Positions 1 to 34,305 of a stretch of DNA of 64,000 nt are shown piece by piece; within the stretch, counting starts at the first letter, position 1; every line of letters starts with the position of its first letter. Under the pieces are notes generated by a model that was not told the origin of the DNA, did not search any database, and was given only the letters and a program-made list of their open reading frames with translations. The translations under genes and the position numbers were made by a program. The stretch comes from Octopus sinensis (lineage: Eukaryota): assembly GCF_006345805.1 (NCBI RefSeq), contig NC_042997.1:205096001-205160000 (forward strand). Reading direction: 5' to 3'.

Positions 1-455
1 TCAATTCTTCGAATATCAAATATATTATATCGCGTCTTTGAATATTTTGTTTTGTACAATTTATATCGATATCAATTCTTGGATTAGCAATGTATAGACA
101 TCTAACAAATTCAAAGAGTAAGGTGAGAAATCATAGTAGAAATTTTTATATGCTATTAAACCGTCTGGTTTATCTGGAATCCAGGTAAAGAGTCTCGCGT
201 TTGCAAAATAATCCAATGGTACAGGATTAAGAAGGTCATCAAGTGTCTTGTTTGATAATGGACTTCAAAATGGAAAACTTTTTTTCCCAATTTTACTAAA
301 CGAGATAAAATATTCGTTACATTGGGAGGGATTTTCATTTGGCAATCATTGTCGAGTTCCTTCGCTTCGATGTTTAGTGCAGTTAGTGTGATAATAAGAA
401 TGATTGAAACAATAAGAGAACTGGTTGCTGTTGTTGTCGTCTGCATGGCAGCCAT
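1..455 (-). pseudogene. Paralog A of the orphan multipass membrane protein family; N-terminal part only (runs off the left edge), two frameshifts
   Basis: Aligns base-for-base to 20826..21279 (paralog B). Has a 1-nt deletion near 257 (gataatgg vs gataaatgg) and a 2-nt insertion near 93-95 (gcaatgtatagac vs gcaatgtagac). Corrected frames read [60 protein letters not shown]. Confidence 0.8.
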
Positions 456-1650
456 ATTTCGTTATCTGTAATAAAAAGAAAATAGAATACATAAATTAAT
501 GAAGATTCGTTTTAGGTTCATTACTCCATAGATATTTCAAACCGAAAATATTCATTATAAAACTGAAAGTAATAAGGAAGAACCATTTTAGTTACATTTT
601 TGTGTATTCGAAATGAGGAAGATTTATTTTAAACCGGATGTAAAAACTACAGGAGAAGGTAGAAACAGTGATAACCACAACCACAGCATTCAAGCAAAGC
701 CACCGCAAACATCATGAGTTACAAGAAAACCTGACGTCAAGGAATCGCCACTCCTGTTGCAAGCTGACAATTTCTCACAAAACAAAGAAGCCACCATCAC
801 TACCAGCACCACAAACACTATCTCGTCAATGTAAGATCCATTTTTGCACCATCAAACAATGATATCCTCATCGCCATTATGACTTTTGTAGCAGGTCAAT
901 CCGTTAGTATACAGACCAATAGGTCAGGGTAAGCACAAAAACTGAGCCTATTTTTCACTGCAGTGAAGATATCAGCAAAGATTGATTTAAATATGTAATG
1001 GCTATCACAGTTGAAGAAAATGGTAACCAAAGCAGAGCCTACAGAACATAGTAGATGCGTGGTAACCTACAGTTGCACAAAGCAAAAAAGAAGGTGAGTG
1101 GAAAAACCAATTCCAGTCCATGTCGAAACGTGCCTGAAATTTGTTCAGAGTCAAAGTACTTTTAGCACTCGTGGCAGACAATGCAGTACGGTCTATGTCA
1201 GAGTTTCTACATACATCGAAGTAAGAACCTTTCTCTAAAGTGAGGAATTCATCCTAAAATCTTCATGTTGTTGCCGATGCGGTGTGAAGGTAAGAGCGGC
1301 AGACGTGATGTCAGAAATAAACATTTGATTAATGGTAACGGCTGTATTGGCAGACATTGAAGAAGAGCACTAAATCAGCTAGAACGGGGCGGAGGGCGAG
1401 GTCCGTCCCAGGCGGCATTTTTATGGGTATATGCTGTAGGCTATAAGCCAGTACAGGCTGTATTGAAATCAAATAATAGTGGTTTTCATGTCGGGAGATG
1501 GACACTACGCACCGTTAAATGCAACAAACGATATATCTTTTGTGGGATTCCGGGGACTGCAAATTGAAGGGCTGCTCCGGGTAGCACAGACTTTAGCTAT
1601 AGCAATGAAGAGGTGCCACATACATCAGAAGGGAACGCGGTAAGCAGGAA
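1..1650. repeat. Segmental duplication block 1, copy A (partner 20826..22486)
   Basis: Continuous direct similarity at offset ~20825, from tcaattcttcgaatatc to gtaagcaggaa. Confidence 0.95.
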
Positions 1651-1920
1651 TCGGGGCTCTTGACAAAGACAGCAGAGACTCGAAAGTGTCTTCCAACTCA
1701 TTCATTCGTCGGGAGGAACCCTTTTTGTATGCGGTGGTTTTATATCCTAGGCATCTCGTTTTCGGATGTTGTAGCGTAATTGCTGCCCGACTCATAGGTA
1801 GTATTATTCGTTGCACACAACACTCAATAAACAGAAGAGTGCCATATCATGTGAAATTGGTTGAACGATATTCCGGCATCTAGCGTGCCTTCCACGTCAG
1901 TCTAATCCACTTTTTGTTAA

Positions 1921-2023
1921 GACTCTATGGGACCGAGGTAACTCATCCAGAAGTTATAGAGAAATAAATAGAAGAGTGCCATATCATGTGAAACTGGTTG
2001 AGTTACCTCGGTCCTATATAGCC
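1921..2023. mobile_element. 103-bp fold-back MITE with 30-bp imperfect TIRs, flanked by TTAA
   Basis: 1921..1950 matches the reverse complement of 1994..2023 at 26/30. TTAA at 1917..1920 and 2024..2027. Confidence 0.6.
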
Positions 2024-2224
2024 TTAATAATAAAAATGATGATGATGATGATGATGATGATGGTAATAATAATAAATCAAATATGATTGTATTCAAAGAG
2101 AGATGGTGCAAGAGGTGTTTGGGAACATATTTTGTAATCTGATTAAACAACCCTGAACTAAGAAAAAGCAAATGTATTTTAACCGTCTTTGTTCACTGCA
2201 GACATCGTTTACACATCGGTAGTC

Positions 2225-2800
2225 TTCAATGAATCTATGGTACTGTGAGAATGTCTCCTTTGGATAACACTTCATCCGTAACAGTCTATAGAATTTAAAT
2301 CTGACGAAATTTGGAGCTAAAAGCTTGTTAATATATGTTCATAATAGTTGTCTGACAGCCCTTTTAGTGTTACGTGAGCTTTTTCAGAAGGTGCTGAGTC
2401 TTATTGAAATACGTATGGCCTTCCATTGCGAATTTCTCCCATCCAGGTTTTGATAACTGTCTCCAGCACTTCAACATATCCAACAACATTAATTGCAAGT
2501 CCCTGTGGAAAGATGCGAAGTGGCATGACATGAACTTCGTTATATGCCTTTCATAAAACCATCACAGTTGCCGGGAACTTACGGTGCATCTTTCAGAAGA
2601 CAGCAAAAGGATTTGCACATAGCTGCTTATTATATTTCCAGTTAGACTTTTGGTCTTAGTCGAAGATTTCCTCATCAGAGAAGCAAAGCATAGAATGTTC
2701 ATAGGAAGTTTTCAGGTTGGTAAATAACCGCTTGGCAACGATGAAACGATTTCCTCAAACAAACAGCAGCGTAGATGTACGAAAAGATTCAAAACAAAAA
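2225..2800 (-). mobile_element. Degenerate Tc1/mariner transposase remnant
   Basis: Broken minus-strand frames give all three catalytic-motif regions: MLCFSDEEIFD*DQK, KFPATVMVL..HVMPLRIFPQGLAINVVGYVEVLETVIKTW..GRPYVFQ*DSAP, SSDLNSIDCY. Confidence 0.75.
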
Positions 2801-3876: not shown

Positions 3877-6800
3877 TGTCAGGTCTCCGCTCGGAGCTAC
3901 TGGTAACATGTAACCCAGTACAACTTGTTACATGGTCGAGTCGTTGGCGACTAAACTGGCAACCCCACCAAGATTTCTTGGTGAGGAGGGTTATTTGGAC
4001 ACCCAACAGGACTAAAAACAAAACCTGTCAAAGAGCAGAGGAACTCTCTCATGAGTCAATGGCCATCCAAAAACCCACATAAATCCAGAGTGGAGCCCCT
4101 AAGGCGGTTCGATTGCGCCATGCGTGCCACCTTCCGGCAGCTCCTGCATCCTGGTCTACCCCCAGCCGTCTTGACTTTGTCTTGCCACTGGATCCGGCGC
4201 ACCAGGACGAGAGAGTGAGGCTGATTCTGCGCAAGTCACCCTCACTATAATCCAAGTCACGCGCACGTCATGACATCATGACACCAACATCACAAAGTCC
4301 TGTGGCGATGGGGAAACGGCGAAGTAGCAGGTGAGGATACACTGGGAGCTGCAGTCGTGAACCTACACACACGGCTCAGGACATGTAGTCGCCCCTCACT
4401 GAACTGAGGCAGCAGTGGAGTCCGGCACCCACCTGAGTGACCGAGCAGCTCTCTTCAGGATCGCTCTGCTCGCCTCCGCAGCATGAGGACGGGGCTAGAA
4501 AAGGTTGCTCTAAACATAGCCTGCCTCACCTCACCCTGGTCAGCAAACCGCGGCTGGCGGGGGTCCTTTCCAAGCGGTCGAAACAAAGAAAGAAAACGAA
4601 CAAAGGTGCTCACTTTCGCAACTTGGAACGTGAGAACTCTGCTTGACAACACCAAAGCGGACAGACCAGAGAGACGAACTGCCCTGGTGGCCAGAGAACT
4701 GAGCCGATACAATGTTGATATCGCAGCAGTGAGCGAGACCCGCCTTGCGGACAAAGGCCAGCTGACAGAGAGAGGCGGTGGCTACACTTTCTTTTGGAGT
4801 GGTCGCAGCAGCGAAGAGCGTCGTGAGGCTGGTGTTGGTTTTGCCATCAAGTCAGTACACGTGCGGAAACTGGAAAGCTCCCCCGAGGGTATCAACGATC
4901 AGCTGATGAAGATGCAGCTCCCACTTGGAAACAAGACTAGTGCGACCATCATCAGCGCTTACGTCCCCACCATGACCAACCCTGAAGAAGTTAAGGACAG
5001 GTTCTATGAGGAACTTGACTCCCTCATCACGTCAGCCCAGCCTGGGAAGCTCATCCTCATTGGGGACTTTAACGCCCGTGTCGGGACTGACCACCAAGCC
5101 TGGCATCGCGTACTGGGAAAGCAAGGAATCGTAAAGTGCAACAACAAGGGGCAGCTCCTCCTGCGGGCGTGCGCCTCTCATGATCTTACCATCGCCAACA
5201 CCTTGTTCCGTCTGCCAACACACAACAAGACATCATGGATGCATCCACGCTCCAAACACTGGCATCTGATAGATTACGTCATCGTCAGGGCGAAAGACAG
5301 GCGGGACGTGAGACTGGTCAAATCCATATGTGGAGCTGATTGCTGGGCGGACCATCGCCTCATCATCTCCAGGATGGATTTCTACATCCAACCTAAGAGA
5401 AGACCACAGGGTCAGAAAATGACGAGGAAGCTTATCATCACGAAATTAAAGAACCAGCTGACTGCACAAGATCTCCAGTCACGTATGGACAGCAAGCTGT
5501 TGGACATTCGGAATGACCAGTCCAGCATCGATGAGCAGTGGGAATCATTCAGGGACACGGCTCATTCCATCGCCCTTGAAACTCTAGGCCAAGTTACGAG
5601 GAACCACCAGGACTGGTTCGACGAAAACGACCAGGAAATCCAAAAGCTCATGGAAGAGAAACGCCGTCTGCTTCGGGCCCACCAAAATGATACCACCTGC
5701 ACGGCAAAGAAGGCTGCTTTCAACAACATTCGCAGCACAGTCCAGGCAAAACTCCGCCTCATGAAAGACGCATGGTTAAGCGCCAAGGCGGATGAGATTC
5801 AGGGATATGCAGACAAACACGACACCAAGAAATTCTATGAGGTGCTGAAAGCTGTCTATGGACTGCAGTCCTCCTTTGGATCAACCACCCTGCTCAGCTC
5901 TGATGGAACCTCACTCCTGACTAACAAGAGGCTGATCCTGGAGAGATGGGGGCAGCATTTTAACATCGTGCTCAACCGACCAGCCCAGATCAACGAGGAA
6001 GCCATCGCACGACTACCCCAGGTGCCGACAAACCACGAGCCGGCTGTTCCATCCCTGCAGAAGTGTTCAAGTCGGGCGGCCCCACCATGATCAGTCAGCT
6101 CACCAGCCTGTTCCAGTCGATGTGGGACAGGGAACAACTCCCTCAAGATTTCCGGGACGCAACAATCGTCCACATTTATAAGCGGAAAGGAGATCGCCAG
6201 ACCTGCGACAACCACCGAGGAATCTCCCTCTTGTACATAGCAGGCAAGATCCTTGCCCGAGTCCTGCTTGACCGCCTTCTGGAACACTTGGAGCAAGGCC
6301 TTCTCCCTGAGAGCCAGTGTGGCTTCCGCGCAGGTCGAGGGACCACTGACATGATATTCGTCGCCCGCCAGCTCTAGGAGAAATGCATGGAGCAGCACCT
6401 TGACCTCTGCATGACCTTTGTTGACCTCACCAGGGCTTTCGATACAGTCAGTCGGGAGGGACTCTGGAAGGTCATGGGAAAATTTGGTTGCCCCAGCAAA
6501 TTTATTGCAATTGTCCGCCAGTTCCACGACGGAATGACAGCCAGAGTCCTTGAAGACGGCAACTCATCTGAAGTCTTCCAGGTGACCAACGGAGTCAGGC
6601 AGGGCTGTGTCCTGGCCCCAACACTGTTCAGCATCATGTTCTCGGCAATGATGTCCGATGCCTTCAGGGACTGCAAGTCCGGTATCGACATCAAGTACAG
6701 GACGGACGGGAAATTTTTCAACTCCAGAAGATTGCAGGCCGTCACAGAGTTGAGGGAGACAGACATCAGAGACTTTCTCTTTGCTGACTACTGCGCCCTT

Positions 6801-7765
6801 AACGCAATCGATGAACAGAAGATGCAGCTCGGGATGGACAGGTTCTCATCAGCCTGTGACAACTTCGGTCTCACCATCAGTGCCAATAAAACCGAAGTGA
6901 TGTTTCAGCCAGCCCCCGGCTAACAATACCATGAGCCTCAGATAAAGGTGAACGGACGGATCCTACGAGTGGTGGAAAACTTCACCTTCCTGGGCAGCAC
7001 TCTCTCCTGCAATGCCAACATAGATGCTGAAATCATCAACAGAATCTCCAAGGCAAGCAGCACGTTTGGGAGACTGCGAAAGAAAGTCTGGGAGCGGAGA
7101 GGAATCAGCCTCAACACCAAGCTGAAGGTCTACCGGGCAGTCGTGCTTACCACCCTACTATACGGCTGCGAGACGTGGACTGCTTACCGAAGGCACGAGC
7201 GCCAGATAAACCACTTCCACCTAAGGTGTCTTCGGAACCTCCTTCACATCCGCTGGCAGGACAAAGTCCCAGACACGGAAGTTCTGAAGTAGGCAGATCT
7301 CCCTAGCACCATCACGATCATGCGCAAGGCCCAGCTGAGATGGGCAGGTTACGTCTCCCGCATGTCCGACACTCGCATCCCAAAACAGCTCTTCTACGGT
7401 GAACTCAGCCAGGGAAAATGCAAAATCGGAGGGCAGAAGAAGCGCTTCAAGGACAGTCTCAAAGTCTCTCTCAAAGACTTCTCCATCGGCACAGAAACTT
7501 GGGAGACACCGCTCATCCTGGCGCAGCGCAATCACCACAGGAGCAAAGACAGCCGAGGAGAGACGGATTCAGTCAGCAGAACAGAAACGCCAGATGCGGA
7601 AAACCAGAGCCACCTGCACCAATAGCACAGCCCCTACCCACTTCTGCCCCACCTGTGGGAGGGGCTTTCTTGCCCGGATTGGCCTCACCAGCCACCTCCG
7701 GTCTCAGAGGAGTAATTCCACCAAATGATGTCACTGGTCATCTTCGAACCCGAAGGACGAACATT
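3877..7765 (+). mobile_element. Full-length RTE-clade (BovB-like) LINE, inactivated, with 13-bp target site duplication
   Basis: TSD ATTAAGTGCATTG at 3864..3876 and 7766..7778. Contains a ~600-bp 5' UTR, an APE-RT ORF, a short 3' UTR and a catt/att tail. Confidence 0.95.
4483..7728 (+). pseudogene. RTE ORF (AP endonuclease + reverse transcriptase + C-terminal C2H2 finger), disrupted
   Basis: Motifs TWNVRTL, SETR, LIGDFNARVG, HLIDYV, QCGFRAGRGTTD, GVRQGCVLAP, LFADY (FADD degraded), LLYGCETW, CPTCGRGFLARIGLTSHLRS. Frameshifting deletions near 6053 and 7508. Stops at 6375, 6921 and 7290. Confidence 0.93.
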
Positions 7766-8329
7766 ATTAAGTGCATTGGACTCAGAGGGATTTTTAAAAC
7801 CATTTGGGGGTTAAAAAAAAGAAATAAAGTCGCGTCTTATAAACCATCAAATAAGATATTTATTTTGCAATAAAATACTTACTGCGGAGAGACTTTTTGC
7901 ACATCCTGTTTTATCCCAACCAAAAGAACTATAAAGTAACAAGCAGAAGCAATCTAAAAAGAATAAACTTAATAGCCAGTTAGATAATGGATAAATATAA
8001 GATCGTCAATAAATCTGCACCTTAGAAAGTTAAACTACCAAGACTTAACATTAAATATCACAAAACTAATTTCAAGACTAATATATACCCATCAAAATCT
8101 GACATAGGCTAGATAAGTAAGCTGATTATGGATGAGTATATACCCGGATCAAGAAATATAATTAATCTTACACTTTGGTCTAGCTCATATGAGGTAATTA
8201 ATCGGTTTAATAAAATAAATATTAAACACACAAAAAATTCGTTTATAAAAACAGCAATCATCCATAAGATAGAAAATAGCTGAAAAGGTATCTGCACATA
8301 TTTCGAACCTAACGGCTGGTGAAGAAGGC

Positions 8330-8748
8330 AAACGAAATACCTATTTCTTTACTACCCACAAGGGGCTAAACACAGAGAGGACAAACAAGGACAGACAAAC
8401 GGATTAAGTCGATTACATGGACCCCAGTGCGTAACTGGTACTTAATGTATCGACTCCGAAAGGATGAAAGGCAAAGTCGACCTAGGCGGAATTTGAACTC
8501 AAAACGTAACGGCAGACGAGATACCGCCAAGCATTTCGCAAAAGTAAGACTATTATCTTTGTCTTTTCTCATCAAGGCACCAGGTCCGGAATTTTGGTGG
8601 AGCGGATTAAGTCGATTAGATCGACATCAGTACGCAACTGGTGCTTAATTTATCGACCCCGAAAGGATGAAAGGCAAAGCCGACCTCGACGGAATTTGAA
8701 CTTAGAACGTAAAGACAGACGAAATACCGCCAAGCATTTCGCAAAACG
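8330..8748 (-). mobile_element. tRNA-derived SINE family 1 (octopus type), two to three concatenated modules
   Basis: Reverse complement of the module gtatttcgtctgccgttacgttctgagttcaaattccgccgaggtcgactttgcctttcatcctttcggggtcgat (B-box gttcaaattcc), which recurs many times in the window. Confidence 0.8.
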
Positions 8749-8859: not shown

Positions 8860-9645
8860 CAGGGTCCTGTCCACTTGACCAACGATGTATGATTAAACTT
8901 GTCATATATGATGCAGAAGTTACTGCTACGCTAAATGTTAATACAACTGATAAGAAAACCTAAATTGGATCATGTGAAGGGGAATTTAAAAAATCGCTAT
9001 GCTAATCACATAGCCTCTTTCCGACATAAGGACAAAAGCAAAGCTATTAAGTTGGCTAGCCATGTATGTAGTTTGAAAGCTACCGAAACACCATATGTGA
9101 TTAGGTGGAAAATAATTGAGAAATCTATACCTTATGTTAATGGATCAAATACATGTAGGCTATGTTTAGCTGAAAGAGCTCAGATCTTTTTCAGATCTGA
9201 GGTCCTTAACTCAGCGGTTGCGAAAATATGTATGAATATAGTTTTATAAATGTATGTATAAATATACAAATGGTGAAGTAGCTGTGAATAATCAGAGAGA
9301 ATTTATATTACAATATCGCGAGAAAATGTGGATGAAACTGAAAATTATAAAAAAGAATTGAAACTCACATAGTTGCAACATTTGGTTCCTTCTAGGAGAG
9401 TAGTTTCTTTCTGTATGCTGCTAAGAACGTAAATTCGAATGTGAAAATTTGGCCAGAAACGAATGACTATTTTTAAATTGTTATTTTTACTGTACAAACA
9501 TCAATTATTTGATACAGGAAGCATTACTCTTACATTCCAAACAAGCTAAATTTTAAATTGTTTTAAATTAATGTTTTCTTTCAATATGTCTGCCGACTCA
9601 TGTGTGTACTAAGGGGCATGCGGCTATTTACATATATATGTATGT
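8860..9645 (+). repeat. ~785-bp direct repeat (partner 10631..11415) containing a Penelope-like GIY-YIG fragment plus flank
   Basis: High-identity match at offset 1771 starting at cagggtcctgtccacttgacc. ORFs 8935..9249 and 10706..11020 are nearly identical. Confidence 0.92.
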
Positions 9646-10529
9646 ACAGATATGTGTATACTGTAGCTTGTAGCCCCAGGAGAACATCTTCTCCAGCTGG
9701 CTATTGACACACTTTCTGTGTCCTATCAGTATTTGCAAAGGGAAGCCATCCTTCCCATCGTCGACCTGACGTGATACGCACGGACCCTGGTTTATGAGTA
9801 ATTACCCGTCATCAGCGCACGACAATCACCGGTCTTCAAGGCGAATGGGTCCCAAAGCAAATACATATATCCTAATGATGATATTAAGAAAAATAAGTTT
9901 ATATCCTCTGATAAAAGCGATAGGAATTTGGATGGTAATCATATCGGGTGAGATAAAGGTAGAAAAATTGAAATAGTATTTAGTATAGATAAAAATACCA
10001 ATGACGCTAATAAAATAAAACCGAATTATATAATAAGAAATCCAATTAACAAAAACTTTTATTAAAACTTACGACAAATAACGGCAGCGCAAAATGCGAA
10101 AAGATTAAGTTATTTGTACGAGGAGGTTAGCTATAACGTAAATAAGCGCTAGATATTCGCCTTTTCCCTCGATTCTCCTGTTCGTTCGGCGAAGAAGTCG
10201 GGCTTGACTGTCAGGGGATATGTCTTGCGCAGGCCATTGGAGTATTAGGGCTAATGCAGCTTCGCACCTCTCCTTGAAAAATACATATTTTGCAAAACAA
10301 ATTTATCGGATTCCTACGTTTTAGATGTCGAAGATTACGAATATGCACAAAAACAATTTCGAAGAATAAGAAGAAATTGGTTCGTTCTAATTACGTCGTT
10401 GAGCCGGCATTTTCTTTACAGCGAATTGTTAATCAGGACTAGCAGTTATCGTCAAAGGAGAATGATGAATTCTTTGTGTTGCAGCAGCTTTTCAGCAACC
10501 CACACATAGAAGAAAGTATTTAATAGGCT

Positions 10530-11000
10530 TTCTAAGAAATTATCTTATAGCAGCTTTTGCCCCAACATGAAGAGTATCGTTACACGAGATGAATACCAAG
10601 AGCCTAAATCCAGTTGTAACTGTCACAACCCAGGGTCCTGTCCACTTGACCAACGATGTATGATTAAATTTGTCATATATGATGCAGAAGTTACTGCTAC
10701 GCTAAATGTTAATACAACTGATAAGAAAACCTATATTGGATCATGTGAAGGGGAATTTAAAAAATCGCTATGCTAATCACATAGCCTCTTTCCGACATAA
10801 GGACAAAAGCAAAGCTATTAAGTTGGCTAGTCATGTATGTAATTTGAAAGCTACCGAAACACCATATGTGATTAGGTGGAAAATAATTGAGAAATCTATA
10901 CCTTATGTTAATGGATCAAATACCTGTAGGCTATGTTTAGCTGAAAGAGCTCAGATCTTTTTCAGATCTGAGGTCCTTAACTCAGCGGTTGCGAAAATAT
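10530..11000 (+). mobile_element. Penelope-like element GIY-YIG endonuclease remnant (further copies at 8860..9225 and 22700..23195)
   Basis: KLSYSSFCPNMKSI..CNCHNPGSCPLDQRC..VIYDAEV..TYIGSCEGEFK/RYANHIASFR..WKII..TCRLCLAE: a VIY-YIG nuclease with Cys clusters. Confidence 0.8.
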
Positions 11001-11494
11001 GTATGAATATAGTTTTATAAATGTATGTATAAATATACAAATGGTGAAGTAGCTGTGAATAATCAGAGAGAATTTATATTACAATATCGCGAGAAAATGT
11101 GGATAAAACTGAAAACTACAAAAAGAGAATTGAAACTCACATAGTTGCAACATTTGGTTCCTTCCAGGAGAGTAGTTTCTTTCTGTATGCTGCTAAGAAC
11201 TCAAATTCGAATGTGAAAAACTGGCCAGAAACGAATGATTATTTTTAAATTGTTATTTTTACTGTACAAACATCAATTATTTGATACAGGAAGCATTACT
11301 CTTACATTCCAAATAAGCTAAATTTTAAATTGTTTTAAACTAATATTTTCTTTCAATATGTCTGCCGACTCATGTGTGTACAAGGGGGCCAGCGCCTATT
11401 TACATATATATGTATGGAGAGATATATGTATGTATAGTAGATTATAGTGTTGTATATACGTTCTGCTGGCTGACAGAATCGTTGGCCAACCTGG

Positions 11495-11858
11495 AGAAAT
11501 ACCTAGCGGTATTTCGTCTGCCGTTACGTTCTGAATCCAAATTCAGCCGAGGTCGAATATGCCTTTCATCCTTTCGAGGTCAATAAATTAAGTACTAGTT
11601 GCTCACTGGTGTCAATATAATCGACTTAATCCGTTTGTCTGTCCTTGCTTGTCCTCTCTGTGTTTAGCCCTTGGAGGTAGTAAAGAAATAGGTATTTCGT
11701 CTGCCATTGCGTTCTGAGTTCAAATTCCGTCGAGAACGACTTTGCATTCCATCCTTTCGGTGCCGATAAATTCTGTACCAGTTGCCTACTAGGGTCGATG
11801 TAAACAACTGGCCCCATCCCCAAAAATTTCGGGCCTTGTGCCTAGAATAGAAAAGTAT
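11495..11858 (+). mobile_element. SINE family 1, two modules
   Basis: Same module and linker (aatccgtttgtctgtccttg...gtttagcccctt) as other copies. Confidence 0.8.
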
Positions 11859-11861
11859 ATA

Positions 11862-11935
<74 letters not shown>

Positions 11936-19083: not shown

Positions 19084-21279
19084 TTAAAAGAGATGAGATT
19101 CATTCTCTTCTTCATATGATTTGATTGTTTCAACGATTTTATCTGACAGGGTTATATCAAGAACAAATCTAGTGTTCATTATCGACAAAAGATTCGGTAT
19201 CAAAGACGTCATTAATATCAGAGTAATCCTTGTGAACGCTGATAAGTCCAAGTCTTCTCGACTTATTATATTGTTGCAAGCAAAGAAAAAAGATACGATT
19301 AGAAACAGTTTTACAATGGATTTACCAATCTCGAATCTCAATGGAAAACGACGGTTAACAATTGTCTTAAACAAACTGGCATTTATGAATTCTTCTCCAT
19401 ATTTTGTCTGAACTAAATTTGGACGAAAAATGTTCGTGAGCTTTACAGAATTAAATATTACCGATTGATACTGCTTCATGATGGCGTTCACAATTGTAAC
19501 GCCATACACGAAAAACATGGCAGCAAACCATACGTCACCGACATTATCAGGTTTAGCCAGTACGGAGATACCTATTGTAAATATATAGGAGCATAGAACT
19601 TCCATAGTTACAACAAAAATGTACATTGAAGAAAGTTCCCATAATATACAAAACGGTAAGGATAGAAAAGTTAGAACTGCAGCAACAATCTTAAAAATAT
19701 AATTTGGATTTTCATAGAGAGGGAAAATATAAACTCTAGAATAACTTAATGGTAAAGTCGGAATCAAATAAACAAATGGGATTCCGTAATACACGATGCA
19801 CAGAAATAATTCACACATACAAAATGCAGAAAATAAAATTGTAATGGAAAGAAAGAGCCAAAGTGTAATGAATTTCCAGAAAATATTTCTTCCGTAGAAA
19901 TATAACCAAATTTTCTTTATACGATTAATCCAAGTATGAATTATTAAATACCAGAAATTTGGGTTTAAAGCAGTAGAAATATTAGCTTTCATTATTGCAT
20001 AGAGTTGATCATAATCCTGTAGAGTAGAAACATCTAAACTGCCATACTTCTCTAATAATCTAATATTTTGAATGAGAAACGTGCAAGTGGATCTTTGATG
20101 TAATGTATTATAAGCGATAGTCTCACTTGTTCGACTGGGAAGAACGAAGAGGATAAAGTTGAAAGATACGTAACAGATAAACCACACAAAGGGACCACCA
20201 AATAAGCCATCAGTATTCTCATAACTTTCTGGGATTCCTAATATTAAGGCGCGATGTCCCAATGGTATACCATCTTGGTAAAGAATTTCTATTGTTTCAT
20301 ATAAAACGAAGTAATGCATCAAAAGATCCAGGAAAATTATTGAAAGAGGAAATAGAATAAATAAGAATCTTCTTAGTCTTGAGGCAAAGAATGTGGAATG
20401 GTGAAAGCAAAATAACCAGGACAGAATATCAGTGAAATTGTAAGTATTATGGTTTTCGTTGATCCATTCTAATTTGTATGGCAATGTGTTTTGATGGGAA
20501 AATGAAGGTAATTTAGCTTTTGATACAAAACTAATAAACAATGGGAAATATGCGCATAAAACTGCTGCGACGATATTTTCAAGATTTGCAAACATACTGA
20601 CGTTAATATTACTTCCAGCACAAATGGATTTTGGATGATAAACATAGCTTTCATTTTTATGGAGTTCGCAGCAATATTTCTTCAGCAAATTCCGATTCAT
20701 ACCAATTCTTCTGTAAGCTTCAAATGAGAAAGGATTGTTTTTCTTCATGTCTTGAGATAAATTTATAAAAAAACACATGTATCCAGATTTTCCCATTATC
20801 GATTTTTGTATAAATACGAATCTTTTCAATTCTTCGAATATCAAATATATTATATCGCGTCTTTGAATATTTTGTTTTGTACAATTTATATCGATATCAA
20901 TTCTTGGATTAGCAATGTAGACATTTAACAAATTCAAAGAGTAAATTGAAAAATCAAAGAAGAAATTTTTATATGCTATTAAACCGTCTGGTTCATCTGG
21001 AATCCAGGTAAAGAGTCTCGCGTTTGCAAAATAATCCAATGGTACAGGATTAAGAAGGTCATCAAGTGTCTTGTTTGATAAATGGACTTCAAAATTGAAA
21101 ACCTTTTTTCCCAATTTTACTAAACGAGATAAAATCTTCGTTACACTGGGTGGGATTTTCATTTCGCAATCATTGTCGAGTTCCTTCGCATTGATGTTTA
21201 GTGATGTCAGTGTGATAATAAGAATGATTGAAAGAATAAGAGAACTGGTTGCTGTTATTGTCATCTGCATGGCAGCCAT
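19084..21279 (-). CDS. Paralog B: uncharacterised 731-aa signal peptide + Cys-rich ectodomain + ~9-10 TM membrane protein, single-exon CDS
   Basis: Uninterrupted 2196-nt ORF in repeat-rich DNA. Hydrophobic N-terminus ending LNINA-KE, six ectodomain Cys, five N-glycosylation sequons (NKT, NCT, NLS, NES, NVS), many hydrophobic segments after NIVAAVLCAYFPL. Colinear with paralog C. Confidence 0.9.
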   Translation of the reverse strand: MAAMQMTITATSSLILSIILIITLTSLNINAKELDNDCEMKIPPSVTKILSRLVKLGKKVFNFEVHLSNKTLDDLLNPVPLDYFANARLFTWIPDEPDGLIAYKNFFFDFSIYSLNLLNVYIANPRIDIDINCTKQNIQRRDIIYLIFEELKRFVFIQKSIMGKSGYMCFFINLSQDMKKNNPFSFEAYRRIGMNRNLLKKYCCELHKNESYVYHPKSICAGSNINVSMFANLENIVAAVLCAYFPLFISFVSKAKLPSFSHQNTLPYKLEWINENHNTYNFTDILSWLFCFHHSTFFASRLRRFLFILFPLSIIFLDLLMHYFVLYETIEILYQDGIPLGHRALILGIPESYENTDGLFGGPFVWFICYVSFNFILFVLPSRTSETIAYNTLHQRSTCTFLIQNIRLLEKYGSLDVSTLQDYDQLYAIMKANISTALNPNFWYLIIHTWINRIKKIWLYFYGRNIFWKFITLWLFLSITILFSAFCMCELFLCIVYYGIPFVYLIPTLPLSYSRVYIFPLYENPNYIFKIVAAVLTFLSLPFCILWELSSMYIFVVTMEVLCSYIFTIGISVLAKPDNVGDVWFAAMFFVYGVTIVNAIMKQYQSVIFNSVKLTNIFRPNLVQTKYGEEFINASLFKTIVNRRFPLRFEIGKSIVKLFLIVSFFFACNNIISREDLDLSAFTRITLILMTSLIPNLLSIMNTRFVLDITLSDKIVETIKSYEEENESHLF

Positions 21280-21289
21280 ATTTCGTTAT

Positions 21290-21305
21290 CTGTAATTAAA
21301 AAAAT
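21290..21305 (-). promoter_or_regulatory. 3' splice acceptor 10 nt upstream of the paralog B ATG
   Basis: Minus strand ttttttaattacAG|ataacgaaatATG. Same arrangement in A (AG at 467-466) and C (AG at 32089-32090). Confidence 0.7.
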
Positions 21306-23236
21306 GGAATGCATAAAATAATGAAGATTAGTTATAGGTTCATTACTCCATAGATATTCAAACAGAAAATATTTATTATAAAACTGAAAGTAATAATGAA
21401 GAACCATTTTAGTTACATTTTTGTGTAACAATTCGAAACGAGGAAGATTTATTTTAAACCGGATGTAAAAACTACAGGAGAAGGTAGAAACAGTGATAAC
21501 CACAGCCACAACATTCAAGCAAAGCCATCGAAAGCTTCATGAGTTACAAGGAAAACTGACGTCAAGGAATCGCCACTCCTGTTGCAAGCTGACAATTTCT
21601 CACAAAACAAAGAAGCCACCATCACTACCACCACCACAAACACTATCTCGTCAATGTAAGATCTATTTTTGCCCCATCAAACAATGATATCCTAATCGCC
21701 ATTATGACTTTTGTGGCAGGTCAATCCGTTAGTATACAGACCAATAGGTCATGTAAGCGCAAAAACTGAGTCATTTTTCACTGCAGTGAAGATATCAGCA
21801 AAGATTGATTTAAAAATGTAATGGCTATCACAGTTGAAGAAAATGGTAACCAAAGCAGAGCCTACAGAACATAGTAGATGCGTGGTAACCTACAGTTGCA
21901 CAAAGCAAAAAAGAAGGTGAGTGGAAAAACCAATTCCAGTCCATGTAGAAAGGTGCCTGAAATTTGTTCAGAGTCAAAGTACTTTTAGCACTCGTGGCAG
22001 ACAATGCAGTACGGTCTATGTCAGAGTTTCTACATACATCGAAGCAAGAAACTCTCTCAAAAGTGAGGAATTAATCCTAAAATCCTCATGTCGTTGCCGA
22101 TGCTATGTGAAGGTAAGAGCAGCAGACGTGATGTCAGAAATTAACATTTGATTAATGGTAACGGCTGTATTGGCAGACATTGAAGAAGAGCACTAAATCA
22201 GCTAGAACGGGGCGGAGGGCGAGGTCCGTCCCAGGCGGCATTTTTATGGGGGTATGCTGTAGGCTATAAGCCTGTACAGGCTGTACTGAAATCAAATAAT
22301 ATTGGTTTTAAGGGAGTTGGACACAACGCACCGTTAAATGCAACAATCGATATACACACTGTGCAATGTATATTCTTGTCGGAGTCCGGGGACTGCAAAT
22401 TGAAGGGCTACTCTGGGTAGCACACACTTTAGCTATAGCACTGAAGAGGTACCTCATATAACCGAAGGGCACACGGTAAGCAGGAAGAACTGCTTTTCCG
22501 ACTCCTACGCTTTAGATGTCGGAGATTCCGAATACGTGAAAAAAAAAAGTTCGAAGAATAAGGAGAAATAAGTTCGTTCTAATTACGTCGTTGAGCCGGC
22601 ATTTTCTTTACAGCGAATTGTGAATCAGGACTAGCAGTTATCGTCAAAGGAGAATGATGAATTCTTTGTGTTGCAGCAGCTTTTCAGCAACCCACACATA
22701 GAAGAAAGTATTTAATAGGCGTTTTATGAAATTATCCTATAGCAGCTGTTGCCCGGACATGAAGAGTATCGTTACACGTGATGAATACCAAGAGCCTAAA
22801 TCCAGTTGTAACTGTCGCAACCCAGGGTCCTGTCCACTTGACCAACGATGTATGATTGAATTTGTCATATATGATGCAGAAGTTACTGCTACGCTAAATG
22901 TTAATACAACTGATAAGAAAACCTATATTGGACTATGTGAAGGGGAATTTAAAAAATCGCTATGCTAATCACATAGCCTCTTTCCGACATAAGGACAAAA
23001 GCAAAGCTATTAAGTTGGCTAGCCATGTATGTAGTTTGAAAGCTACCGAAACACCATATGTGATTAGGTGGAAACTAATTGAGAAATCCATACCTTATGT
23101 TAATGGATCAAATACCTGTAGGCTATGTTTAGCTGAAAGAGCTCAGAGCTTTTTCAGATCTGAGGTCCCTAACGCAGCGATAGGCAAAATATGTATGAAT
23201 ATAGTTTTGTAAATGTATGTATAAATATATATATAG

Positions 23237-23407
23237 AGGAGTTGTTGTGTGGTAAGTAACTTGCTTATGAATCACATGGTTTCGGGTTCAGTCCCACTGC
23301 GTGGCATCATGGGCAGGTTTCTTCTACTATAGCCTCGGGCCGACCAATGCCTTGTGAGTGGATTTGGTAGACGGAAACTGAAACAAGCCCGTCGTAATAA
23401 ACGTATA

Positions 23408-23506
<99 letters not shown>

Positions 23507-23610
23507 GTATGTGTATGTATGTGTGTGTATATGTTTACATGTTTGTATTTATCCCCTCAACATCCCTTGACAACCGATGGTGGTGGTGTGTTTAAGTCAC
23601 CGTAACTTAT
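23237..23610 (+). mobile_element. tRNA-derived SINE family 2 (octopus type), 3'-truncated, internal (TA)n
   Basis: gtgtggtaag..catggtttcgggttcagtcccactgcgtggc..gtgagtggatttggtagacggaaactgaa, as in the copies at 40212, 58697, 37340 and 61838. Confidence 0.8.
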
Positions 23611-23697
23611 TATTTATAAGTGTAGGTGGTATACGAGTGAAGATAAATATCTTATATAGTGGCGTTTTCAAACTTCTTTTTTAGAAATACATATATA

Positions 23698-24086
23698 CTA
23701 GCAGTATCACCCGGTGATGCTTGGGTTTTTTTCGACACTTTAGAATTGAAATTTTTTAAAAGTAAAACTTTTGCATTATGCAACTTGTTATTCTCTTCAA
23801 GTGAACATTTTTCCAGTTGTAATACACCGAAAAATGGTGACACAGCAGAGAAAGATCTTAAAAAATAGGGATTTTCATAGAAAAAAAGCACCTTTTTTAT
23901 GTAAAGAATTTGTTGTGTTAACATGGTCCGATTTGAATTTTATCTTCTTCAGAATGAAGAGCAAGCCTTCTTCTATCATACTCTCAATTTTGGTCAACTT
24001 GCGCCGCAGCGTCTCGAAGGAGATGGTGTTAGTTGAAGGCTACCAAACTTGCCACACACAGACAACTTCAGCTTTATATATATAGA
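23698..24086 (-). mobile_element. 389-bp non-autonomous Helitron with canonical termini
   Basis: Minus strand A|TCTATATATATAAAGCTG... at 24086 and ...cccaagcatcaccgggtgatactgCTAG|T at 23698: TC/CTAG ends, subterminal hairpin-like segment, AT target. Confidence 0.75.
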
Positions 24087-25244: not shown

Positions 25245-25580
25245 TATATATACACTTATATATATATATGTGCATATATATATATATATACACTTGTATA
25301 TATCAAGACCAAGAACCCATATTAAATATTCCTTCAGACCTACTACTAACTACCTGCTGAGCCTTCACAAAAGTAAAGGAGAGAGAGAGGCAGAAAATAA
25401 TGTCCCATATATTTGAAAACTATGGAAATATTTTAAAACCCATTTCATTTAATTTTTCCACAATTTAATTGTTTTTCAAGTTGAAAAAGTCGCTAAGTAA
25501 GGAACCGGTACTAAAATGTTCATGATAAAATTATTCTCGCATTTTCTACCTTGTCCTATTTTCCTTATATATATGTGTAA

Positions 25581-25975
25581 AGCGGCGAACTGGCAGAAGC
25601 GTTAGCACGCCGGGCGAAATGCGTAGCCGTATTTCGTCTGCCGTTACGTTCTGTATTCAAATTCCGCCGAGGTCGACTTTGCCTTTCATCCTTTCAGGGT
25701 CGATAAATTAAATACCAGTTACACAGTGGGGTCGATGTAATCGATATAATCCGTATGTATGTCCTTGTTTGCCCTCTTTGTTTTTAGCTCCTTGTGCGTA
25801 GTAAAGAAATAGGTATTTCGCAAGCTGTTGCGTTCTGAGTTCAAACTCCGCCGAGATCGACTTTGCCTTTCATCCTTTCGGGGTCGATTAATTAAGAACC
25901 TGTTTCGTACTGATGTCGATGTAATCAGCTGGACCCTCCTCAAAAATTTCGGCCGCGTGCCTTGAATAGAAAAGC
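25581..25975 (+). mobile_element. SINE family 1, full head plus second module
   Basis: gcggcgaactggcagaagcgttagcacgccgggcgaaatgc (A-box-like) and attcaaattcc (B-box-like). Confidence 0.8.
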
Positions 25976-25976
25976 T

Positions 25977-26015
<39 letters not shown>

Positions 26016-26248
26016 GTATGTATATACAAAGAAAGAGAGAGGGGGGAATAAAAATAATTTCATCATGCAAAAAAAAAAATGATTTAATTATTTTAGTGAT
26101 TACAGTTACGAGACTAATGAATAATGTCCTGCATCATAGACAGAGATGCTGTGTAGACGCTAGAACTGCATCAAAGAGTAGTCACTCTCTCTCTCTCTCT
26201 CTCTCTCCCTCTCTCTCCCTCTCTCTCTGTCCTTCTCTCTATCTCTGC

Positions 26249-28829: not shown

Positions 28830-29880
28830 CTTTTACTTGGTACACACAGTTTGTCTGTGTCACTTTTCGGGTGGAGTGTCCCATATCTACTTAGCAGCTT
28901 CCTTGTCTTTCTCTCTAAGCTGTTTAGTTCTTCTACTGTCCGTGCGATTACCCCTGTTCAATATCTAAGGAGTGAAACAGCCCCGGTATTGATAGCTTCA
29001 ATCTTACTCCGTTCAATTAATTTCGACTTAAGGATCAGTCTCAGTCTGTGCAAGTACGCCAACATAAATTTTTCTGTCATTTCTTTCTCCATCAATTTAT
29101 CCATTTCCAATATCCTCAAGTACTTATAGCCCGTCTCTTCTATCTGCTTCATAACCTTCCCCGACGGTATCGATTGTCCGTCCATGCATATGATTTTGCC
29201 TCTCCTCAAGTCTAACACACCACACTTTCTCAGTCCGAACTTCATTTTGATATCAGCACTGACGGTATATACCGTACCAACGAGGGAACTGACTTAGGCT
29301 TCATCTTTACCATAAAATTTGAGGTCATCCATGAAAAACATATGGTTGACTTTTTGTTGGCGGCTTTTGAATACATACCCAGCCTTTGCTTTCCTCACAA
29401 TCAGTGTTAATGGTATCATGCACAGTACAAAGATCAGTGGGGACAGGTAGACCCCTTGCAAGATGCCTCACCTGATTTCTCTTGTCCTAAACTTCTTCCA
29501 CATGCTGTCAGTTCCGTCCTCCACTTCGCCCTACTGTTGCGAAGCAATCGCTCAACATTCGATGGAATACCAAGTAGGTTCATACATTCTATAATCCAAG
29601 AATGTGGGACCATATCGGATGCCTTACGATAATCGATCCATGACATGGCTAAGTTACTTTTCTTCCTCTTATAGTCCCTAAGTACAGTTTTGTTTATCAG
29701 AAGTCGATCCTTGGTACCAGATGTCCGTACACTGACTCTGCGAGTATTCCAGTCAATAATTCCTACGTAATTGGTAAGCAGGATATCGGCCTGTAATTGT
29801 CTACCGTATTCCCTTTTTCAGTGTTTTCAAGCACAGTACTCTCCTACCCAATGTCAACCAGTGTAGTGTTACTTTGTCGA
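28830..29880 (-). mobile_element. R4/Dong-like RT fragment (duplicate of ~14970..15960)
   Basis: WIDYRKASDMVPHSWII, MKFGLRKC, INTGAVSLLRY. Truncated by the SINE array. Confidence 0.8.
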
Positions 29881-30899
29881 AAGGCAAAGTTGACCTCCAT
29901 GGAATTTGTACTCAGAACGTAGCGACGTGCGAAATGCCTATTTCTCTACTACCCACAAGGAGGTAAACACAGAGGGGACAAGCAAGGACAGACAAACGGA
30001 TTAAGTCGATTACATCGACCCCAGTGCTTAACTGGTACTTAATATATCGACCCTGAAATGTTGAAAGGCAAAGTCGACCTCTGCGTAATTTGAACTCAGA
30101 ACGTAACGGCAGACGAAATACCGCTAAGCATTTCGCCCGGCGTGCTAACCTTTCTGCCAGTTTGCTGCTTAATAACTGGAGATAATAATCTTTTTTGCTA
30201 CAGGCACAGGGGCAGAGATTTCAAGGGATCGGGGTGGGGACTATCGATGACATCGACCCCAGTGATCATCAGGTACCTATTTCATCAATCCTGAAAGCAT
30301 GGAAAGCAAAGTCGATCTTGGCAGAATTTGAACTCAGAACGCAAAGATGGACGAAATACTGCTAAGCATTTTGTCCAATATGCTAACGATTCTGCCAGCT
30401 CACTACCTTAATAGCGAAAAACAGCAGTGTCAGTAAATACTATATATCATAAATATTTCTGTAATAATATTCTTTTCTACTCTAGGCACAAGGCCCGAAT
30501 TTTTGGGGGAAGGGGCCAGTTGATTAGATCGACTCCAGTTCGCAACTGGTACTTAATTTATCGACCCCAAAAGGATGAAAGGCAAAGTCGACCTCGGTGG
30601 AATTTGAACTCAGAACGTAGCGGGAGAGGAAATTCCGCTAAGCATTTCACCCGGAGTGCTAACGTTTCTTATTTCTTTATTGCCCACAAGGGGCTAAACA
30701 TAGAGAGGACAAATAAGGAGAGACAAACGGATTAAGTCGATTATATCGACCCCAGTGCGTAACTGGTACTTATTTAATCGACCCCGAAAGGATGAAAGGC
30801 AAAGCCGACCTCGGCGGAATTTGAACTCAGAACGTAACGGCAGACGAAATACGTCTACGCATTTCGTCCGGCGTGCTAACGATTCTGCCAGCTCGCCGC
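29878..30899 (-). mobile_element. Concatemer of about five SINE family 1 modules
   Basis: Repeated gaaaggcaaagtcgacctc..ggaatttgaactcagaacg blocks near 29880, 30062, 30300, 30575 and 30790. Head ends at gctcgccgc 30899. Confidence 0.8.
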
Positions 30900-30919
30900 T
30901 TTTATTACTCTATTAATGA

Positions 30920-31489: not shown

Positions 31490-31502
31490 ACTGTCTATCT
31501 AT

Positions 31503-31551
<49 letters not shown>

Positions 31552-31573
31552 CATCTATCCATCTGTCTATCTG

Positions 31574-31612
<39 letters not shown>

Positions 31613-31632
31613 CTCTATCTCTCTCTCTCTCA

Positions 31633-31705
<73 letters not shown>

Positions 31706-31735
31706 CATCTGTCTATCTGTCTGTCTATCTATCTG

Positions 31736-31793
<58 letters not shown>

Positions 31794-31820
31794 AATCTCT
31801 CTATCTCTCTCGCTCTCTCA

Positions 31821-31866
<46 letters not shown>

Positions 31867-31888
31867 CTCTATCTCTCTCTCTCTCTCA

Positions 31889-31926
<38 letters not shown>

Positions 31927-31927
31927 G

Positions 31928-31989
<62 letters not shown>

Positions 31990-31990
31990 A

Positions 31991-32025
<35 letters not shown>

Positions 32026-32026
32026 A

Positions 32027-32068
<42 letters not shown>
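31490..32068. repeat. (ATCT)n microsatellite in the presumed 5' UTR intron of paralog C
   Basis: Directly visible. Stop-free in two frames, which produces the YLSI extension of ORF 31477..34305. Confidence 0.95.
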
Positions 32069-32100
32069 ACTTGTATATTCTCTTCTGCAGAAAACGAAAT

Positions 32101-34305
32101 ATGGCTGCCATGCAGATGAAATTAACAGCAACCAGTACTCTTTACCTTGTGATTACTTTTATTGTCGTTCTGATATCAATAAATATCGATGCGAAGGAAC
32201 TTGGAAGTAATTGTGAAATTAAAATTTCCCCCAATATCCATAAGATTTTATCTCGTTTTATAAAATCAGACAAAAAGGTTTTCAATTTTGATGTCCATTT
32301 ATCCGACTCAAGGCTTGATGTCTTATTGAATCCCGTACGAATGGATTATTTCGCGAACGCGAGACAATTTACCTGGATTCCAGAGAAACCAGATGGTTTG
32401 ATTGCGTATAAGAATTTCTATTATGATTTTTCAATTTACTCTTTGAATTTATTAGGAGCTTACATTGCTACTCCTAGGGTTGATATCGATATAAATTGTG
32501 GAAAACAAAATATTCAGAGACATGATCTAATACATTTGATTTTCGGGGAATTGAAGAGAATTGTATTAATCGATACATTGGAAATAGGAGAATCTGGTTA
32601 CATGTGTTTTCTAATAAATTTATCTCAAGACATGAAGAAGAACAGTCCCGAGTCATTAAAGGCTTACAGAAGATTGGGTATAAATAGAGAGTTGGTGAAG
32701 AACTATTGCTGTAATCTCTATAAAAATGAAAGCTATGTTTATCACCCAAAATTGATTTGTTCTGGAAATATCATGGAAAATAGTATGTTTCTCAATTATG
32801 CAAATATCGTCGGAGCTGTTGTTTGGGCATATTTTCCCTTAATTATTAGTGTTCTTTCACTTACGAAATCACCTTCATTTTCCCGTCAAAACACATTGCC
32901 ATACAAATTAGAATGGATCAACAAAAACCATAATACTTACAATTTCCCTGATTTTCTTTCTTGGTTATTTTGCTTTCATCATTCCACTTTCTTGGCCTCA
33001 AGACTAAGAAGATTCCTTTGTATTTTATTTTCTCTTTCAGTAATTTTCCTGGATCTTTTGATGCATTACTTCTTTTTATATGAAACAACCAAAATACTTT
33101 TCCAAGATGGTATACCATTGGGTCATCTCGCCTTAATATTAGGTTTTTCACAAAGTTATGAGAATACAGATGGCTTTTTTGGTGGTCCCTTTGTGTGGCT
33201 CATCAGTTTCATATTTTTCAACTTGATTCTCTTCATCCTTCCCACCCGTGTAAGTGAGACTGTGGCGTATAATACATTACATCAAAGATCCACTTTCACG
33301 TTTCTCATTCAAAATATCACATTATTAGAGAAGTATGGCAGTTTAAATGTTTCTACACTACAGGATTATGATCTACTCTATGCAATAATGAAAGCTAATA
33401 TTTCTACTGCTTTAAACCCAAATTTCTGGCATTTAATAATTTATACTTGGATTAAACGTTTTAAGAAAATTTGGTTATATTACTACAGGAGAAATATTTT
33501 CTGCCAATTCATATTGCTTTGGTTTTTTATTGCGATCACAATTTTATTTGCTGTATTTTCTGTCTGTGAATTAATTCTGTGTTTGATTTATTACGGAATC
33601 CCAACTGTTTATTTGATATTAACTTTACCAGCAAGTTATTTTAGAGTTTATATTCTTCCTCTTTATCTGAATGTTAATATTATTTTCAGTTTTGTAGCTA
33701 TACTTATTACTTTTCTATCGTTTCCGTTTTATATATTATGGGCCCTTTATTCAATCTTTATATTTCTTACAAGTTTCCACATCTTATGCTACTACATATT
33801 TACGATAGCTGTTGCACTTCTTGCTGAACCTGATAATGTCGGTGACGTATGGTTTGTTGCCATGTTTTTCGTGTATTGCATTGCAATTGTGAACGCTAAT
33901 ATAAGGCAGTATCAATCAGTAATAGTTAATTCTGTAAAGCTCGTTAAAGTTTTTCGTCCAAATTTAGTTCAGACAAATTATGGAGAAGAATTCATAAATG
34001 CCAGTTTGTTCAAGACAATTGTTAACCGTCATTTTCCATTGAGATTCGAGATTGGTAAATCCATTGTAAAACTGTTTCTAATCGTATCTTTTTTCTGTGC
34101 TTGCAACAATATAATAAGTCGAAATGATTTCGACTTATCAACGTTCACAAAGATTTCTTTGATATTGATGACGTCTTTGATACCTAAATTATTGGCGATA
34201 ATTAATGCTAAATTTGGTTTAACTATATCCCTGACACATAAAATTATCGAAACGATTATTGTATTTGACGATGGCGCAGCACCACATACCAGTTTGTCAA
34301 TTTAA
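32101..34305 (+). CDS. Paralog C: uncharacterised 734-aa multipass membrane protein; true start MAAMQ at 32101
   Basis: Colinear with paralog B (roughly 70% identical by eye), all six ectodomain Cys conserved, start preceded by tcttctgcAG|aaaacgaaat. Confidence 0.9.

Follow-up and report, generated by a model that had tools for sequence, protein, structure and literature searches.

Clustered octopus genes for multipass membrane proteins with a cysteine-rich ectodomain, a candidate receptor or channel family without characterised relatives

The window studied here, a stretch of 64,000 nucleotides of the Octopus sinensis genome (~205.096-205.160 Mb on chromosome CM016859.1 of assembly GCA_006345805.1), contains three copies of a gene for a multipass membrane protein with a cysteine-rich ectodomain. 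The copies, called A, B and C, were located by open reading frame (ORF) listing and by tblastn with copy B as query (Table 1). Copies B and C are intact; they share 72% of their protein and about 82-83% of their DNA sequence and stand head-to-head, since their 5' ends face each other at a distance of 10.8 kb. Copy A lies in tandem with copy B, and its DNA is ~93-95% identical to copy B over the visible codons 1-151. A 1-bp deletion within a T-run (~257-258) and a 2-bp TA insertion (~95-96) shift its frame twice relative to B. These two indels could be real lesions or long-read indel errors. Three paralogs, one broken and two intact in head-to-head orientation, had been proposed in the preliminary description of this DNA, and the ORF listing and tblastn confirmed this arrangement. 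The exact product of copy C is a called gene of the chromosome from 205,128,101 onwards, and its ortholog in Octopus bimaculoides is LOC106877664 with 86% amino acid (aa) identity.

The protein starts with a hydrophobic, signal-peptide-like helix (residues 1-31) that ends with I-N/D-A before K-E-L and may be cleaved. In the AlphaFold model, residues 32-227 fold into a six-stranded alpha/beta domain. This ectodomain contains six cysteines (C38, C133, C169, C203, C204 and C220), which probably form three disulfides, and the N-glycosylation sequons N173 and N209 are common to B and C. With three disulfides and sequons, the N-terminal domain would be located outside the cell or in a lumen. Hydropathy and the AlphaFold model indicate membrane helices at ~228-253, 297-325 and 363-379. 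Between transmembrane helices (TM) 3 and 4 follows a Lys/Arg-rich helical domain of ~90 aa (residues 381-469), which is presumably placed in the cytosol according to the topology. Later hydrophobic helices cover residues 466-499, 501-523, 527-575, 577-618, 647-674 and 681-703, and a C-terminal helix comprises residues 707-730. In the model, the hydrophobic stretch of 46 residues at 530-575 appears as a single uninterrupted helix. With one crossing of the membrane by this helix, the protein would have nine passes, its N-terminus outside and its C-terminus inside, and this arrangement is the best fit to the positive-inside rule; as a hairpin, the stretch would give ten passes.

Confident modelling depended on the depth of the alignment. 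With 12 octopod sequences AlphaFold gave a useless model (predicted local distance difference test score, pLDDT, 40), while the 104-sequence alignment resulted in a pLDDT of 85.1 and a predicted template modelling score (pTM) of 0.85. The loop between TM1 and TM2, which the model shows as disordered, differs in length from paralog to paralog: the shortest insertion has 16 aa, and the longest, a tandem repeat in the protein P0016, a few hundred residues. Long Ser/Pro/Asn/Glu-rich tandem repeats inside this loop were observed in some octopus proteins (among P0016, P0013 and P0017-P0019). No internal duplication or inverted repeat was found in the membrane core by hhalign of sub-alignments. A signal peptide, an ectodomain of ~200 aa with six cysteines and about ten TM segments had been expected from the first inspection of the sequence; the signal-peptide-like N-terminus, the cysteine positions and the 9-10 membrane helices seen by hydropathy and in the AlphaFold model agree with this, and all motif blocks quoted at that time are present in B and C.

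To collect relatives, a profile of 12 octopod sequences was searched, without word index, against 1.84 billion cluster representatives. At E<=1e-3 the search gave 132 proteins, of which 109 also passed E<=1e-10; most have 750-860 aa and align nearly end to end. Every representative named by its source is called an "uncharacterized" or "hypothetical" protein. Further cephalopod members were found in O. bimaculoides (at least six), O. vulgaris and Argonauta hians. The bivalve relatives come from Mytilus species, Ostrea edulis, Mercenaria, Mya, Potamilus and Sinanodonta, and the non-bivalve relatives from the abalone Haliotis asinina and the annelid Owenia fusiformis. As far as sampled, the family is therefore restricted to spiralians (cephalopods, bivalves, a gastropod and an annelid). 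A similar architecture in predicted proteins of bivalves and corals had been suggested earlier; the bivalve part holds and extends to abalone and annelid, whereas no coral member was seen. A third, word-indexed homolog search with a broad profile returned octopus proteins only. In bivalves the family is diversified into several subfamilies with less than 30% identity in Mytilus alone. The abalone gene likewise has a single-exon coding sequence (CDS). At the Owenia locus (L011) two tandem copies (10001-15352 and 18691-23730) are ~85% identical to each other, and each has one coding intron after residue ~189, splitting most of the ectodomain (1-189) from the rest. The public Owenia gene model is not translatable from the stored locus as called. 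Several public octopus gene models (among P0016, P0013 and P0017-P0019) either skip from the ectodomain and TM1 straight to the last three helices or contain a family fragment fused with a gelsolin gene; such models were probably built over damaged copies.

Across these distances the pattern of conserved residues is sharp. In the 95 non-octopod relatives the ectodomain cysteines are conserved in 83-100% of the sequences, far beyond chance, with C203 at 100% and C169 at 98%. Among the core motifs, P381 (100%), G362 (99%), W443 (98%), R453 (97%) and E490 (95%) reach similar values. Likewise conserved in the 104-sequence alignment are W92, S114, P246, R301/R304 (SRxxR), G361-G362-P363, P381, F442-W443, R453, E490, P501 (YYGxP), P577, Y592, Y604, P646 and P695. 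Near-invariant residues of the core are the membrane-buried E490 in TM4, the SRxxR motif at the cytosolic mouth of TM2, the GGP and YYGxP turns at the outer ends of helices, and the helix-kinking prolines P246, P381, P501, P577, P646 and P695. Copies B and C carry all family-defining positions, namely the six cysteines, SRxxR, GGP, P381, FW442-443, R453, E490, YYGxP, P577, Y592, Y604, P646 and P695.

Comparison with characterised proteins gave no relative. A Pfam-A scan of 32 members revealed no credible match, and neither phmmer nor a profile hmmsearch against all PDB chain sequences returned anything below E=1. Foldseek of the whole model against 350,542 PDB chains gave no significant match. 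A Foldseek search against the BFVD viral models gave no match either, so that a viral origin is not supported. A remote resemblance at the level of single domains, beyond these whole-model PDB and BFVD fold searches, is possible. The earlier statement that the proteins belong to no named family is thus in line with the Pfam, PDB sequence and fold searches, in which no characterised housekeeping family was found either. One catalogued domain of unknown function, DUF8415 (PF28478), has a weak precomputed match on the abalone member P0035 only, while the octopus members are without precomputed Pfam match. The Pfam copy scanned here did not contain the DUF8415 model, and P0035 remained unmatched there; DUF8415 may cover part of the family. 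A literature search on the LOC identifiers, on DUF8415/PF28478 and on STRA6 in octopus or molluscs gave nothing relevant.

The sole functional label in the databases is found in UniRef, where the O. bimaculoides proteins P0008 and P0009 are named "Receptor for retinol uptake STRA6". The Pfam model RBP_receptor (PF14752) does not match B, C, P0008 or P0009 even at E<=10, nor did it match 28 further members at the cut-offs used for them (E<=1 or E<=10). With hhalign, the 104-sequence profile reached a probability of 0.2% against STRA6, used either as a single sequence or as a profile of 15 mammals. This STRA6 profile is shallow, since the homolog search gave only mammals among the 120 listed. 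The STRA6 structure 5SY1 is absent among the 82 Foldseek matches and was not found by profile hmmsearch of the PDB. The human STRA6 sequence used served as positive control after validation (5SY1 match with E=2.6e-169; PF14752 with 869 bits). Similarities between both proteins are of a general kind: both are multipass and have comparable lengths (~670-730 aa), and STRA6 crosses the membrane nine times with the N-terminus outside and the C-terminus inside (PDB 5SY1), an arrangement that may also apply here. To our knowledge, STRA6 has neither a signal peptide nor a cysteine-rich ectodomain of 200 aa. It features nine TM, an intramembrane helix and C-terminal calmodulin-binding helices, compared to the 9 or 10 passes and the helix 707-730 of the octopus proteins. 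We judge the STRA6 label to be a spurious automatic annotation.

Other receptor families differ as well. The octopus chemotactile receptors are nicotinic-like, with Neur_chan_LBD and Neur_chan_memb domains and four TM, whereas the present family has no Neur_chan Pfam match and 9-10 helices. Insect odorant and gustatory receptors (7tm_6/7tm_7) have seven helices and an N-terminus inside; here, there is no Pfam match, the helices number more than seven, and the N-terminus would be outside because of the signal peptide and the ectodomain. In overall layout, with an extracytosolic domain at the N-terminus ahead of many membrane helices, the family resembles SID1/SIDT, HGSNAT and the TMEM87/GPR107 GOLD-7TM group, whose structures are solved. 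None of these was among the Foldseek PDB matches listed at E<=10, and in contrast to this group the ectodomain is alpha/beta with six strands and three probable disulfides, not a beta-sandwich. On present evidence, we regard the proteins as a new family and not as a member or variant of a known one. The sequences are already public as uncharacterised predictions; no description, valid family assignment or structural relative of them was found.

The copies in the window belong to a larger population on the same chromosome, where at least 11 loci, window included, comprise at least five intact and 5-6 disrupted genes (Table 1). Birth-and-death evolution with local duplication and loss via frameshift and nonsense mutations is supported by this finding, in agreement with the cluster, duplication and pseudogenisation described from the window alone. 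Over the P0011 pseudogene, the loci L006 and L007, 8.3 Mb apart and ~21.7 kb each, agree completely in tblastn alignment and in called product. One of them is located 35 kb from the chromosome end; the pair reflects either very recent duplication or an artefact of the assembly. Tandem-array chemoreceptor families are known to form local clusters, to have few or no coding introns and many pseudogenes, and to show ratios of nonsynonymous to synonymous substitution (dN/dS, omega) of ~0.4-0.5. In its genomic behaviour the present family resembles such arrays (octopus chemotactile receptors, insect odorant and gustatory receptors) without homology to them, and with about a dozen copies it is modest beside them.

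Within the window, the duplication that gave rise to A and B reaches 1.2 kb upstream of the start codon (1-1650 versus 20826-22486, 93% identity), and this shared flank marks a recent direct segmental duplication. Homology between B and C is confined to the CDS and 13 nt upstream of the ATG. A polypyrimidine tract and an AG 10 nt upstream of the ATG were found in 11/11 octopus copies examined, O. bimaculoides orthologs included. From this conservation we infer a putative intron in the 5' untranslated region (5'-UTR) followed by a single coding exon. The earlier description of the CDS as intronless is true in the ORF sense for B and C, the putative 5'-UTR intron aside. A 575-bp (TCTA)n microsatellite stops 32 nt before the start codon of copy C, against the putative splice acceptor. 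A longer ORF from 31477 with an N-terminal extension of 208 codons is spurious because it only reads through the (TCTA)n array.

Selection was estimated with the Nei-Gojobori method, with Fisher p values against omega=1. Between B and C the dN/dS is 0.48 (dS 0.34, p=2e-9), well away from the value near 1 that would have spoken against a functional family. For B and its closest intact paralog P0001 a value of 0.52 (p=0.0016) was obtained, and for C and its O. bimaculoides ortholog P0006 a value of 0.40 (dS 0.17, p=2.4e-8). Omega was 0.37-0.52 in 21/21 pairs among seven intact genes. The intact copies are therefore under moderate purifying selection. Omega amounts to 0.33 in the ectodomain and 0.54 in the membrane core. 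The proportion of nonsynonymous differences (pN) is 0.10-0.14 in the ectodomain versus 0.19-0.30 in the nonsynonymous peaks, which lie at residues 510-630 and in the C-terminal tail.

Conservation at synonymous sites is strikingly high in two islands within the CDS, which encode residues 390-464 and 630-674. As a measure, the differing codons among those encoding the same amino acid were counted. In deep paralog pairs, cross-species pairs included, 2-6% of these codons differ inside the islands versus 19-25% elsewhere (p 1e-5 to 3e-7). For the O. sinensis/O. bimaculoides ortholog pair the values are 4.0% and 11.8% (p=0.019). Between paralogs the pattern could result from gene conversion, which would not account for the deficit between orthologs. 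Concerning RNA structure in the islands, local folding z-scores were ordinary and an island-to-island duplex was not clearly better than the controls. The islands are candidates for nucleotide-level constraint, be it as RNA-editing substrates or as another exonic element. Such nucleotide-level constraint around linked A-to-I editing sites has been reported in cephalopods (PMC5850729).

The remaining sequence of the window is rich in repeats. Between copies A and B lies a long interspersed nuclear element (LINE)-type retrotransposon with AP-endonuclease (PF03372/PF14529) and reverse-transcriptase (PF00078) domains, with a GC content of ~0.52 versus a background of 0.35 and a reading frame broken into several ORFs. 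An ORF of 104 aa (MLIQLIRKP.LDHVKGNLKNRYANHIASFRHKDK...CRLCLAERAQ) occurs three times inside a repeat of ~0.8 kb, with 94-97% DNA identity; one copy is located just upstream of the duplicated flank of copy B. It has no Pfam match and is probably part of a mobile element. A dispersed repeat of ~300-400 bp with 72-86% identity occurs on both strands and is similar in look to short interspersed nuclear elements (SINEs). Further downstream, a 10 kb satellite consists of ~266 copies of the 38-bp unit ATATAAATAAAGTTTTAACTTACCAGACTCAATATTCC with 97% identity; its GC content is ~0.24, with C strongly exceeding G on the plus strand. A scan of the whole window with Rfam at gathering threshold gave no match.

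Table 1. Coordinates of the family copies, their parts and other elements in the window, and of further family loci on chromosome CM016859.1 (in Mb).
Feature	Position	Strand	Remarks
Copy A, 5' part, codons 1-151	455..1	minus	Paralog cut by window edge; start codon 455-453
Copy A upstream flank	456..1650	minus	Includes putative splice acceptor (AG at 467-466) and ~1.2 kb intron or promoter-side sequence
Copy B	19084..21279	minus	Intact single-exon CDS, 731 aa, single ORF
Copy B, signal-peptide-like residues 1-31	21187-21279	minus	
Copy B, ectodomain, residues 32-233	20581-21186	minus	
Copy B, membrane core and C-terminal helix, residues 234-731	19087-20580	minus	
Copy B, putative acceptor AG and 10-nt 5'-UTR stub	21280..21291	minus	ttacag/ataacgaaat ATG; suggested by the sequence
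Copy B, island 1, residues 390-464	19888..20112	minus	
Copy B, island 2, residues 630-674	19258..19392	minus	
Copy C	32101..34305	plus	Intact single-exon CDS, 734 aa; start MAAMQMKL; domain layout as in B
Copy C, putative acceptor AG and 10-nt 5'-UTR stub	32089..32100	plus	B-C homology ends exactly here
Copy C, island 1, residues 390-464	33268-33492	plus	
Copy C, island 2, residues 630-674	33988-34122	plus	
LINE-type retrotransposon	4483-7873	plus	
104-aa ORF, three copies	8935-9249, 10706-11020, 22898-23212	plus	
Dispersed repeat	8333-8740, 11470-11900, 25580-26026, 29880-30900, 59500-59865	both	185-bp tandem pair at 59500-59865
(TCTA)n microsatellite	31494-32068		
Satellite	45095-55181		
P0011	205.016 Mb (L007)		In-frame stop at codon 111
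P0007	205.042 Mb		Intact
P0005	205.342 Mb		Intact; degenerate second copy with five stops 9 kb downstream
P0015	208.475 Mb		Frameshifted
P0002	208.591 Mb		Nonsense codon at position 603
P0001	208.612 Mb		Intact
Locus identical to P0011 locus in tblastn alignment and called product	213.371 Mb (L006)		

As best single reading, to which we assign a probability of roughly 0.35, the proteins would be ligand-sensing channels or transporters at the cell surface; it is only the architecture that points to a receptor or channel function. The protein would reside in the plasma membrane or a membrane of the secretory pathway, and its cysteine-rich domain would face the outside or the lumen. An extracellular ligand would bind to this domain, and its binding would be coupled to the membrane core, by which a small polar or ionic substrate would be conducted or translocated. 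Near-invariant positions at helix ends, the glutamate of TM4, the arginine pair of TM2 and the cytosolic helical domain argue for a core that does work and is not a mere anchor. Rapid copy turnover together with moderate constraint points away from housekeeping and towards an environment-facing role, be it chemosensory, immune or gamete-related.

Several observations weigh against a ligand-sensing channel or transporter. The fold search recognised neither a channel nor a transporter, and its best match in the PDB is TRPV5 with E=0.31 and a TM-score of ~0.1. A scaffold or a lipid-handling protein would be just as compatible with the conserved residues. No gene record with exactly the product of copy B was found, though B is intact, and an omega of ~0.45 could also belong to a dispensable protein under relaxed constraint. 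Finally, the ectodomain is not the most variable region, which weakens the idea of diversifying ligand recognition through this domain. Ligand diversification of the ectodomain, as implied by the analogy to chemosensory and immune receptors, is thus not in evidence, since other regions of the protein evolve faster.

A live alternative, of somewhat lower probability, is that the family consists of non-sensory transporters, lipid-handling proteins or enzymes of the secretory pathway with a lumenal cysteine-rich domain. Lysosomal and Golgi proteins commonly combine a signal peptide with a lumenal domain and a multipass core, and a buried conserved Glu with conserved Arg and Tyr would suit substrate handling, but the heavy turnover in copy number and omega values of 0.4-0.5 are unusual for housekeeping transporters. 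A STRA6-type retinol transporter is the narrow version of this idea; the UniRef label on P0008 and P0009 and the possible nine-pass topology with N-terminus outside and C-terminus inside are in its favour, but it lacks any match by RBP_receptor, hhalign, Foldseek or PDB profile search. Cell-surface recognition or adhesion, between gametes or in self/non-self discrimination, with the multipass core only as anchor or scaffold and without transport, is a further live alternative, though unlikely. The sampled taxa include many broadcast spawners, the family is highly diversified in bivalves, the TM1-TM2 loop is disordered and expandable, and the proteins evolve moderately fast, all of which would suit such a role. 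A pure anchor, however, would not need the observed distribution of conservation, which is strongest in the membrane core and the cytosolic domain and not in the ectodomain alone, and no adhesion domain was recognised by Pfam in the 32 members. That the copies lack any host function, as decaying relics of viral or transposon membrane genes or as annotation or assembly artefacts, is very improbable: intronless multi-copy CDS, many of them broken, surroundings rich in transposable elements including the LINE and the dispersed repeats, and one locus present twice in identical form speak for relics, but comparisons between paralogs and between orthologs show an omega significantly below 1, orthologs remained intact after O. 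sinensis and O. bimaculoides separated, the putative 5'-UTR splice acceptor is kept in all octopus copies, the annelid gene has a coding intron, no viral structure matched in BFVD, and no terminal repeats flank the CDS, with B-C homology limited to the CDS and 13 nt.

In its boldest form, the ligand-sensing channel or transporter would represent a structurally new spiralian class of receptor-channels or receptor-transporters, expanded and turning over in octopus, of a sensory or immune type unrelated to G-protein-coupled receptors, Cys-loop receptors, ionotropic glutamate receptors, transient receptor potential channels and insect-type 7-TM channels. In addition, the synonymous islands may mark conserved elements that tune it at the RNA level, for instance A-to-I editing substrates. 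We consider this extended proposal a long shot.

Animal membrane receptors and channels use few known folds, and a conserved, confidently modelled family with a disulfide-bonded ectodomain that went unmatched in these searches is a concrete candidate for a missing class. The family is tractable, since its octopus genes have a single coding exon, number about a dozen and have clear orthologs in O. bimaculoides. The analysis also corrects the misleading UniRef "STRA6" label, which could spread into studies on mollusc retinoid pathways. If the proteins turn out to be mundane components of the secretory pathway, the main value would be the annotation of a new domain family. The sensory and immune biology of octopus and bivalves leans heavily on lineage-specific gene families.

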